Positions 55,401 through 57,285 of a stretch of 64,000 nucleotides of DNA are shown here, piece after piece; the first letter of the stretch is position 1, and each line of letters opens with the position of its first letter. Below the pieces are notes generated by a model. The model was not told the origin of the DNA. It was given only the letters and a program-made list of their open reading frames with translations, and searched no databases. A program made the translations under genes and the position numbers. The DNA comes from Macrostomum lignano (Eukaryota), in contig NIVC01001953.1 of the NCBI GenBank assembly GCA_002269645.1, positions 62,001 through 126,000 on the forward strand. The letters are read 5' to 3'.

Positions 55401-56486
55401 AGACAGACAGACAGACACTAAGACAGACAGACAGACAGACAGACACTAAGACAGACAGACAGACAGACAGACACTAAGACAGACAGACAGACAGACAGAC
55501 ACTAAGACACTAAGACAGACAGACAGACAGACAGACAGACACTAAGACAGACAGACAGACAGACAGACAGACACTAAGACAGACAGACAGACAGACAGAC
55601 ACTAAGACAGACAGACAGACAGACACTAAGACAGACAGACAGACAGACAGACAGACACTAAGACAGACAGACATACGGACGGACAGACAGACAGACAGAC
55701 AGACAGACAGACACTAAGACAGACAGACAGACAGACAGACAGACACTAAGACAGACAGACAGACAGACAGACAGACAGACAGACAGACAGACAGACACTA
55801 AGACAGACAGACATACGGACGGACAGACAGACAGACAGACAGACAGACAGACACTAAGACAGACAGATACTAAGACAGACAGACACTAAGACAGACAGAC
55901 AGACAGACAGACAGACAGACACTAAGACAGACAGACATACGGACGGACAGACAGACAGACAGACAGACAGACAGACACTAAGACAGACAGACAGACAGAC
56001 AGACAGACACTAAGACAGACAGACAGACACTAAGACAGACAGACAGACAGACAGACAGACACTAAGACAGACAGACATACGGACGGACAGACAGACAGAC
56101 AGACAGACAGACAGACACTAAGACAGACAGACAGACAGACAGACAGACACTAAGACAGACAGACAGACAGACAGACAGACAGACAGAGCGGGCACCTGAG
56201 CGGGCACCGCAGTGGAGCCGCCGTCCCCACCGAGAGCAGCGGCCTCATTGCCAGCCAAGTAGACGCCGTCCAACGAGATGTTGCTGAGGAAGTTCAGAGC
56301 CGCGATGCGTCTTCGGGCTTTTGACTTGGCCGCCGTTCGGCTCCGCTTCGAGGGGATCGGCAGAGCGTCGCCGAGATGCCGCCCGACGCCGACCGAACGG
56401 TCGGTAGAGGCGGCCTGCGCGGCGGCAGCCCAAACGGCGGCCGCTTCAACAGCGGGCGGCACCTCCTTTGACGACGCCGGCTTCAG
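43407..56486 (-). CDS. CABLES: CDK5 and ABL1 enzyme substrate (CABLES1/2) homolog with C-terminal cyclin-like box; 12 exons, ~631 codons, no in-frame genomic ATG at the N-terminus
   Basis: Exons: 56486-56196, 55190-54766, 54050-53994, 50596-50447, 50351-50271, 48671-48545, 48050-47837, 46584-46481, 45583-45443, 44500-44438, 44344-44240, 43544-43407 (sum 1896 nt, in frame). Family motifs: [140 protein letters not shown]. The middle low-complexity exons are less certain. Confidence 0.9.
43955..44220. repeat. (GATA)n microsatellite in CABLES intron
   Basis: Directly visible. Confidence 0.97.
44525..45155. repeat. 21-bp minisatellite (GAGAGAGTGAGGTAGGAGGGT)
   Basis: Tandem units. Confidence 0.95.
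45770..46440. repeat. ~20-bp C/A-rich repeat (CTAAATCCCACACCCACACA / CCCTACCCTAAAT)
   Basis: Tandem degenerate units. Confidence 0.88.
46975..47765. repeat. 24-bp minisatellite (CAGCTGTGAGTGTACACAGGCACT)
   Basis: Tandem units. Confidence 0.93.
48115..48500. repeat. 28-bp minisatellite (GGCCCAGCAACTGAGGATCTGGGAGGCT)
   Basis: Tandem units. Confidence 0.93.
48975..50212. repeat. (AACT)n microsatellite, ~1.2 kb
   Basis: Directly visible. Confidence 0.97.
50810..52300. repeat. GGTCATT-based composite satellite with a ~460-bp higher-order duplication
   Basis: Identical ORF starts at 50968 and 51428. Confidence 0.9.
52995..53782. repeat. 22-bp minisatellite (ACAATCATGTGACAGCTGTGTG)
   Basis: About 35 tandem units. 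Confidence 0.96.
54240..54750. repeat. ~40-bp repeat (TTAGGACACCCTAATTAGAAAGCCTAATTACGACACCAAA)
   Basis: Degenerate at the 5' side and homogeneous at the 3' side. Confidence 0.85.
55243..56186. repeat. (ACAG)n microsatellite with ACTAAG interruptions, CABLES intron 1
   Basis: Directly visible. Confidence 0.97.
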
Positions 56487-56529
56487 CTGAAGTGAAAAGG
56501 GGCCGGAGTTGGCGCTGATGCATCAGAGG

Positions 56530-57180
56530 ATAGAGTGGGAGATGAGGAGATAGAGTGGGAGATGGGGGATAGAATGGGTGATGAGGGGATAGAGTGGGAG
56601 ATGAGGGGATAGAATGCGAGATGAGGGGATAGAGTGGGAGATGAGGAGATAGAGTGGGAGATGAGGAGATAGAGTGGGAGATGGGGGATGGAATGGGAGA
56701 TGAGGGGATAGATCAGTGGGAGATGAGGGGATATGGGAGATGAGGGATAGAATGGGAGATGAGGGGATAGAGTGGGAGATGGGGGATGGAATGGGAGATG
56801 AGGGGATAGATCACTGGGATATGAAGGGATAGAATGGGAGATGAGGGGATAGAATGGGAGATGAGGGGATAGAATGGGAGATGAGGGGATAGAATGGGAG
56901 ATGAGGGGATAGAATGGGAGATGAGGGGATAGAATGGGAGATGAGGGGATAGAATGGGAGATGAGGGGATAGAGTGGGAGATGGGGGATGGAATGGGAGA
57001 TGAGGGGATAGAATGGGAGATGAGGGGATAGAATGGGAGATGAGGGGATAGAATGGGAGATGAGGGGATAGAATGGGAGATGAGGGGATAGAATGGGAGA
57101 TGAGGGGATAGAATGGGAGATGAGGGGATAGAATGGGAGATGAGGGGATAGAATGGGAGATGAGGGGATAGAATGGGAGA
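56530..57180. repeat. 20-bp minisatellite (GGGAGATGAGGGGATAGAAT) between MCM9 and CABLES
   Basis: Tandem units, pyrimidine-rich on the transcribed (minus) strand. Confidence 0.95.
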
Positions 57181-57279
57181 TATATAGAAGGACACGAATT
57201 TAGCTGAGATAGGGTCAAATAAAAGGAAAGATTCTCGTTATAGAAAACAGCAAAGCAAAAAGGAGGAAGACCAATAAGC

Positions 57280-57285
57280 TTTATT
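57280..57285 (-). terminator. Probable polyadenylation signal (AATAAA) of MCM9
   Basis: AATAAA ~190 nt after the stop codon, followed by a U-rich stretch. Confidence 0.55.

Follow-up and report, generated by a model that had tools for sequence, protein, structure and literature searches.

A CABLES gene of the flatworm Macrostomum lignano that probably takes its start codon from the spliced leader

We analysed a stretch of 64,000 nucleotides (nt) from the flatworm Macrostomum lignano (contig NIVC01001953.1, positions 62,001 to 126,000; hereafter the window), which holds a gene for a CABLES protein, here called CABLES-A, downstream of an MCM9 gene on the same strand. The genome offers no in-frame ATG ahead of the conserved N-terminal motif of CABLES-A, and we consider it likely that the gene is obligately trans-spliced and that its initiator codon is supplied by the AUG at the 3' end of the spliced leader (SL), not by the gene itself. 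Such a start is a clear new example of a documented flatworm mechanism and involves no new mechanism. The same proposal had been made in an earlier reading of this DNA from its letters (hereafter the sequence-only reading).

The 5' end of CABLES-A

All CABLES and MCM9 features of the window are given on the minus strand. Those on which the argument rests are the following.

43407-56486, minus strand: CABLES-A coding region, about 11 exons, 636 codons plus stop, located by tblastn of PAA62296.1 against the window
56486-56196, minus strand: CABLES-A exon 1, 97 codons in phase 0, no Met codon in frame, translated as LKPASSKEV...STAVPAQ
56502-56487, minus strand: putative SL trans-splice acceptor, ccccttttcacttcag then CTG AAG CCG, with the AG at 56488-56487
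56525-56523, minus strand: in-frame TGA in the outron, blocking the CABLES frame 39 nt ahead of exon 1
56523-56521, minus strand: out-of-frame ATG, 37 nt before exon 1, opening a 25-codon open reading frame (ORF) at 56523-56446 with stop TGA 56448-56446
56315-56265, minus strand: conserved N-terminal CABLES motif, residues 58-74 of exon 1
55121-55119, minus strand: first in-frame genomic ATG, residue 121, in exon 2 (exon 2 start 55190), downstream of the CABLES motif

The protein carries the N-terminal RRR[IL]... motif of CABLES proteins and shows overall homology to CABLES1/2. The top match of the concatenated exons was the M. lignano hypothetical protein BOX15_Mlig002043g2, partial (100% identity), and the M. 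lignano proteins were followed by more than 100 named CDK5 and ABL1 enzyme substrate 1/2 proteins (phmmer, E ~1e-28). The C-terminal part bears a weak likeness to a cyclin box: PF00134 is carried by CABLES homologues, and the Pfam Cyclin_N match reached 17.9 bits in CABLES-A, a weak match under the 23-bit cut-off, and 23.3 bits, just over it, in the paralogue CABLES-B. The name CABLES given in the sequence-only reading is thus correct, as is the name MCM9, which agrees with MCM9 families and human MCM9 structures; the supposition that the DNA comes from a flatworm was right as well.

The first base of exon 1 lies directly 3' of the acceptor AG, the exon ends in CAG followed by GT (donor GT 56195-56194), and its 97 codons contain no stop and continue in phase into exon 2. 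An acceptor at 56488-56487, in phase 0 and directly before CTG AAG CCG, had been claimed, and it is present there; its hexamer CTTCAG matches the trans-splice motif [T/C]TNCAG. The 41 nt between the upstream minisatellite and exon 1 read ctgatgcatcagcgccaactccggccccttttcacttcag, then CTG AAG CCG. The in-frame TGA that had been put about 40 nt upstream is indeed at 56525-56523, a distance of 39 nt.

From the MCM9 stop to the last base of exon 1, the minus strand has just five ATGs, which begin at 57449, 57439, 57365, 56523 and 56248. The first three belong to the 3' untranslated region (3'UTR) of MCM9, upstream of its poly(A) signal, and the last lies inside exon 1, out of frame. Beyond the MCM9 3'UTR and up to the last codon of the CABLES motif, the sole ATG is 56523, only one base away from the position near 56522 where the sequence-only reading had noticed it, and the 25-codon ORF that it opens would be present only in un-trans-spliced RNA. 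This inventory agrees with the claims that no in-frame ATG lies between the MCM9 poly(A) signal and the motif and that the first one follows in exon 2, past the motif (55121-55119, residue 121). All the features described in the sequence-only reading thus proved to be present. The motif starts 63 codons ahead of this first genomic Met.

Among the retrieved homologues, 108 CABLES proteins from other animals begin with Met and carry the motif, whose pattern starts at a median residue of 12 (range 9-36). Since the motif is N-terminal in these proteins and the first genomic Met of CABLES-A is residue 121, translation of the exon 1 frame must begin ahead of the motif. It could be argued that the protein starts at Met121, which is after all the first in-frame genomic ATG, and that exon 1 is a 5'UTR or the gene is decaying. 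However, the motif is intact in exon 1 of all six gene copies described below, exon 1 is open for 97 codons and in phase with exon 2, and a start of this type would cost the CABLES-B alleles more than 300 residues. We therefore regard a start at Met121 as hardly credible.

A cis-spliced first exon would need a donor, and none with the consensus was found: from the MCM9 stop to the acceptor, a distance of 994 nt, 0 of 17 GT dinucleotides fit GT[G/A]AG. Outrons are classically recognised by an acceptor that has no donor upstream of it (PMC8629364), and this is the situation of the CTTCAG acceptor, which no GT[G/A]AG donor precedes.

The spliced leader, the gene models and the gene copies

The sole reported spliced leader of M. 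lignano is 35 nt long, CGGTCTCTTACTGCGAAGACTCAATTTATTGCATG, with ATG at its 3' end; about 30% of M. lignano genes are trans-spliced, the top trans-splice acceptor motif is [T/C]TNCAG, and the cis-donor motif is GT[G/A]AG (PMC8629364). The terminal ATG is the only ATG of the leader. Hence the leader ends in AUG, as the sequence-only reading had claimed for flatworms, and the organism does trans-splice, so that the absence of SL trans-splicing, which had been named as a refuting circumstance, does not apply. When leader and exon 1 were joined in silico, the result was ...UUGCAUG followed by CUGAAG, in frame, with no stop and with a protein beginning MLKPASS...; the junction expected at 56486 under this model is ...ATTTATTGCATG followed by CTGAAGCCGGCG. 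The SL gene itself is neither expected nor needed in the window, where an Rfam gathering scan gave 0 matches and the 3' half of the leader only one chance match with 3 mismatches.

We propose the following course of events. CABLES-A would be transcribed with an outron, probably from a polycistronic unit in which it follows MCM9. The spliceosome would then join the 35-nt SL to the acceptor at 56488-56487, and the outron would be lost together with its minisatellite, out-of-frame ATG and in-frame TGA. The 3'-terminal AUG of the SL would thereby abut CUG AAG CCG and start a protein with the CABLES motif at about residue 59. We infer that SL reads map to 56486, that ribosomes start at the SL AUG and that MCM9 and CABLES-A share a primary transcript. 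The central claim of the sequence-only reading, that the SL AUG is joined to CTG AAG CCG as Met1, is in our judgement quite probably right: the acceptor is in phase 0, the junction is in frame and the public gene model, flagged 'partial', begins at 56486.

The National Center for Biotechnology Information (NCBI) model PAA62296.1 is flagged 'partial', has Leu as its first residue and no Met, and begins exactly at 56486. In the annotation of Wudarski et al. 2017, SL-containing reads were trimmed and mapped, and TBONE cuts transcriptional units at the peaks into mature mRNAs with exact boundaries (PMC5730564). Because the annotated 5' end is at 56486 and the pipeline cuts at SL-read peaks, the model is indirect evidence for trans-splicing at this site.

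Six loci with a CABLES gene were compared: the near-identical CABLES-A copies L002, L003 and L004, and the CABLES-B copies L001, L005 and L006. L002 is a 25-kb locus from NIVC01001953.1 (GCA_002269645.1, Mlig_3_7) and is identical to the window. All six CABLES-A and CABLES-B models are annotated as partial and start without a Met. The annotated starts of these genes and of the genes upstream of them lie as follows.

CABLES-A, L002 and L004: immediately 3' of AG, phase 0
CABLES-A, L003: 12 nt past a mutated acceptor, not 3' of AG
CABLES-B, L005 and L006: immediately 3' of AG, phase 0
CABLES-B, L001: 6 nt ahead of AG
MCM9, L002: immediately 3' of AG, phase 0 (the single MCM9 start available)
TRMT11-like gene, L005 and L006: immediately 3' of AG, phase 0

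An annotated coding sequence that starts immediately 3' of AG and in phase 0 was found in seven of the nine cases examined, which is far above chance and indirectly points to the pattern expected of trans-splice sites.

The three CABLES-A copies were aligned from 200 nt before the acceptor to the last base of exon 1, and over this stretch they have the same sequence except for repeat differences and for substitutions in one copy, one in the acceptor (L003) and four in the exon. CABLES-B has 42-45% protein identity to CABLES-A and shows the same arrangement. Its exon 1 is preceded by tandem acceptors with an offset of 6 nt, each in phase 0 (actcag, then ttgcag, then CCA CCC CAG). The frame is closed by a stop 27-33 nt upstream, no ATG is in frame, the nearest one included, and two alleles have no Met across more than 300 residues. 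Leader and CABLES-B exon 1 together give MPPQTRR... or MLQPPQTRR..., depending on the acceptor used. The distance from acceptor to motif is 57-59 codons in CABLES-B vs 58 in CABLES-A, and the CABLES motif is intact and in frame in exon 1 of 6/6 copies of both paralogues. The agreement of two further CABLES-A copies, together with the ATG-less CABLES-B, indicates that the absence of an ATG is not an assembly accident. Moreover, CABLES-A and CABLES-B have different upstream genes, so that an indel or an unannotated exon would need an independent origin at both.

These comparisons bear on the proposal, named in the sequence-only reading as a possible refutation, that a 1-nt indel error hides an ATG which is truly in frame, in a conventionally capped mRNA. 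ATG 56523 lies only 37 nt before the exon, one base would restore the frame, and the region contains CCCC and TTTT runs of the kind in which such an error might arise. However, the three copies, each assembled separately, do not differ between this ATG and the exon, bar the L003 acceptor substitution, the annotated transcript starts downstream of ATG 56523, and CABLES-B and MCM9 would each require an independent error of their own. An error of this kind seems to us extremely improbable.

The second refutation named there was a cis-spliced upstream ATG exon, that is, an unannotated exon in or before the MCM9 3' region which is spliced to the 56487 acceptor, either as a mini-exon or as part of an MCM9-CABLES fusion. 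An older ab initio model in UniProt, A0A1I8ISV9 (P0126), does join the MCM9 C-terminus to CABLES, and on paper ATG 57439 together with GTCAGT at 57424 would be in frame. Nevertheless, A0A1I8ISV9 enters exon 1 in a wrong frame and reaches the CABLES frame only with frame-fixing mini-introns, and the fusion is probably a prediction artefact due to the missing genomic ATG. The lack of a GT[G/A]AG donor across the 994 nt and the position of the candidate ATGs upstream of the MCM9 poly(A) signal also speak against a cis exon; the RNA-sequencing-guided annotation has such an exon at 0/6 loci, and CABLES-B is equally ATG-less despite its different upstream gene. We consider a cis-spliced start very unlikely.

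A near-cognate start is the least improbable of the alternatives, and even so we give it little credence. Here a non-AUG codon in exon 1, for example the first-codon CUG, would be used on a trans-spliced or un-spliced mRNA, the SL AUG being skipped or absent. Exon 1 does begin with CTG, one CABLES-B acceptor variant begins with TTG, and SL-linked non-AUG initiation has been reported in other phyla (PMC9851317). However, after trans-splicing an in-frame AUG with a purine at -3 (GCAUGC) would stand immediately upstream and be met first by a scanning ribosome, and the CTG or TTG first codon is not conserved (CCA in L005, TCG in MCM9). A ribosome scanning un-spliced RNA would come to the out-of-frame ATG 56523 before exon 1, and the CABLES frame is shut off by the TGA 39 nt upstream.

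Several observations weigh against initiation at the SL AUG. Neither a search with Met plus the N-terminal 277 residues nor one with the low-complexity-masked N-termini of CABLES-A and CABLES-B found an RNA-sequencing-derived protein starting MLKPASS or MPPQTRR, as the leader junction would give. Both gave only UniProt M. lignano fragments, missed even PAA62296.1 and seem to favour subjects of similar length, which makes them weak negatives. An exon 1 HMMER search of 1.84 billion cluster representatives returned one spurious low-complexity match. As no leader-junction read, complementary DNA (cDNA) or contig was retrieved, trans-splicing at 56486 rests on the description of the annotation pipeline, and translation from the SL AUG would draw its support from precedent only. 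In L003 (NIVC01000469.1) the acceptor CAG is changed to CTG and the annotated start (SSKEV...) lies 12 nt downstream and not 3' of AG, which our model does not explain; in-frame AAG candidate acceptors are found 6 and 21 nt past the lost site (L003:5980-6010). The residues between acceptor and motif (the first ~45 codons) are of low complexity and barely conserved between CABLES-A and CABLES-B, and since the copies differ at only 4-5 exon 1 positions and are too alike for a ratio of nonsynonymous to synonymous rates (dN/dS), coding constraint on these codons is not demonstrated. Finally, the on-paper cis exon with the weak donor at 57424 would be in frame, contrived as it is.

As the acceptor phase and the acceptor-to-motif distance are kept at 42-45% identity, dependence on the SL AUG may predate the A/B duplication. 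We tentatively speculate, although we doubt it more than we believe it, that this dependence is ancient and selectively maintained, is common to the consecutive cistrons MCM9 and CABLES, and gates their output by trans-splicing.

MCM9, the spacer and the upstream genes

The features upstream of CABLES-A are the following.

57478-62156, minus strand: MCM9 gene, stop TAG at 57480-57478, with Pfam MCM9_N, MCM_OB, MCM and MCM_lid on the annotated product
57285-57280, minus strand: MCM9 poly(A) signal AATAAA
57181-56528, minus strand: 20-nt minisatellite, sense unit about TCTCCCATTCTATCCCCTCA, 32.8 copies, 654 nt

The MCM9 product aligns to human MCM9 structures (E=1e-30 to 1e-33). Within 61407-62270, its annotated coding sequence starts without a Met at 62156, directly 3' of AG (cgctccgcag, then TCG CAG CAG). 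The preceding in-frame stop is found at 62270, a distance of 114 nt that holds no ATG, and Met first occurs at residue 59. Residue 11 of human MCM9 aligns to residue 18 of the M. lignano protein. MCM9 is a second candidate for an SL-AUG-dependent gene in the window.

The poly(A) signal had been placed at 57285 in the sequence-only reading, where it begins, and the spacer behind it had been described as about 90 nt of unique DNA and 650 nt of repeat; we find about 98 nt and the 654-nt minisatellite. The minisatellite is pyrimidine-rich, nearly free of G on the sense strand, contains a single GT and makes up most of the outron or intercistronic spacer. From the MCM9 poly(A) signal to the CABLES-A acceptor the distance is about 770 nt, which falls to about 115 nt after subtraction of the minisatellite. 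Ustyantsev and Berezikov (2021) have found that the repeat-adjusted distance between trans-spliced neighbours peaks at about 100 bp, and they used less than 1 kb as the operon criterion (PMC8629364). MCM9 and the putatively trans-spliced CABLES-A are adjacent on the same strand with repeat-adjusted spacing below 1 kb, as in such operons, and it is plausible that they lie on a shared primary transcript.

Upstream of the CABLES-B copies, on the same strand, is a TRMT11-like gene; the two genes are separated by a 16-nt minisatellite (27 or 63 copies) and by about 135-185 nt of spacer outside the repeat. At the TRMT11-like (UPF0020) gene itself (L005:1340-1370, L006:1390-1420), caatttccag is followed by TCC ATG GAG, so that the leader AUG is in frame and a genomic ATG comes one codon later. 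The acceptor is in phase 0 in 4/4 gene families examined (CABLES-A, CABLES-B, MCM9 and TRMT11-like), which agrees with reports that the flatworm leader AUG is in frame in far more than one-third of cases.

A short-unit minisatellite (20-, 17- or 16-nt) was found just upstream of the acceptor in every outron or spacer examined (window 56528-57181 and ~62175-62235; L005:4872-5896; L006:5487-5924; L003:5249-5950), with a copy number that varies among gene copies. These arrays may simply reflect a repeat-rich genome. Intron 1 of CABLES-A (55243-56187) is almost wholly a 945-nt (GTCT)n/(ACAG)n microsatellite of 236 copies, and similar arrays of GTCT and of other short units are found all across the window. 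Farther upstream on the same strand lies an ORF with an MA3 domain (62614-63534, minus strand; Pfam E=1.5e-5), possibly a third cistron of the MCM9-CABLES unit; the distance from its end to the MCM9 acceptor is about 460 nt.

Relation to known systems and other features of the window

The use of the SL AUG as initiator methionine in flatworms has been established since Cheng et al. 2006 (J Biol Chem 281:733, as cited in PMC9851317, PMC12582326 and PMC3510090). In Echinococcus granulosus, 143 of 187 SL-bearing clusters were full length only with the SL ATG, and SL-AUG use is conserved among Neodermata (PMC3510090). The ATG is kept in all reported flatworm leaders, and the Macrostomum annotators regarded the final ATG of the leader as a likely start codon. 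Our literature search yielded no paper that mentions CABLES or MCM9 in M. lignano or puts a figure on its leader-AUG dependence, and no gene identifiers of the CABLES/MCM9 locus in paper texts and supplements.

CABLES-A resembles the SL-AUG mRNAs of Schistosoma mansoni and S. japonicum: the leader has AUG at its end, acceptor and main ORF agree in phase, no genomic AUG gives the conserved N-terminus, and the AUG would be provided in trans. Unlike the parasitic Neodermata, M. lignano (Macrostomorpha) is a free-living, early-branching rhabditophoran, the gene is a different one, and the use of the AUG is deduced from sequence and annotation. The conservation between CABLES-A and CABLES-B is the M. 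lignano analogue of the SL-AUG use kept between orthologues in E. granulosus (PMC3510090), although the E. granulosus cases were read from SL-containing cDNAs, whereas that of CABLES-A was read from the genome and the annotated 5' end. As in the reported M. lignano operons (PMC5730564, PMC8629364), the neighbours share a strand, the downstream gene begins at a trans-splice acceptor and a repeat-inflated spacer collapses to about 100 nt; however, those papers do not address the reading frame or the supply of the start codon, and the operon membership of MCM9 and CABLES-A is predicted here from the sequence. The slORFs of nematodes, Oikopleura and trypanosomes likewise take their start codon from the leader (PMC9851317), but they are mostly alternative, often non-AUG, and overlap annotated ORFs, whereas in M. 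lignano CABLES the main conserved ORF would depend on the leader AUG.

One practical consequence is that addition of the leader AUG would probably complete the 5'-partial, Met-less models of M. lignano, PAA62296.1 among them, and that ab initio predictors which ignore this AUG yield artefacts such as the MCM9-CABLES fusion A0A1I8ISV9. CABLES-A also offers a clean, paralogue-replicated case in a free-living flatworm capable of transgenesis, in which a conserved cell-cycle regulator would not be fully translatable without trans-splicing; the translational role proposed for the flatworm leader AUG thereby becomes directly testable with reporters. If the dependence is indeed ancient, un-trans-spliced or polycistronic RNA from the locus would be untranslatable, and SL-AUG dependence, documented so far in parasitic Neodermata, would extend to an early-branching free-living flatworm and be linked to operon organisation.

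Elsewhere, the window holds two exons of a rhodopsin-family G protein-coupled receptor gene (26742-27317 and 30471-30818, plus strand), whose 7tm_1 match reached E=8.5e-27 in the N-terminal half and 2e-7 at the C-terminal end. A retroelement remnant (21673-24330, plus strand) contains an integrase ORF (rve E=9.6e-11, Integrase_H2C2 E=1.2e-7) and a weak zinc-knuckle (Gag-like) match below the cut-off.

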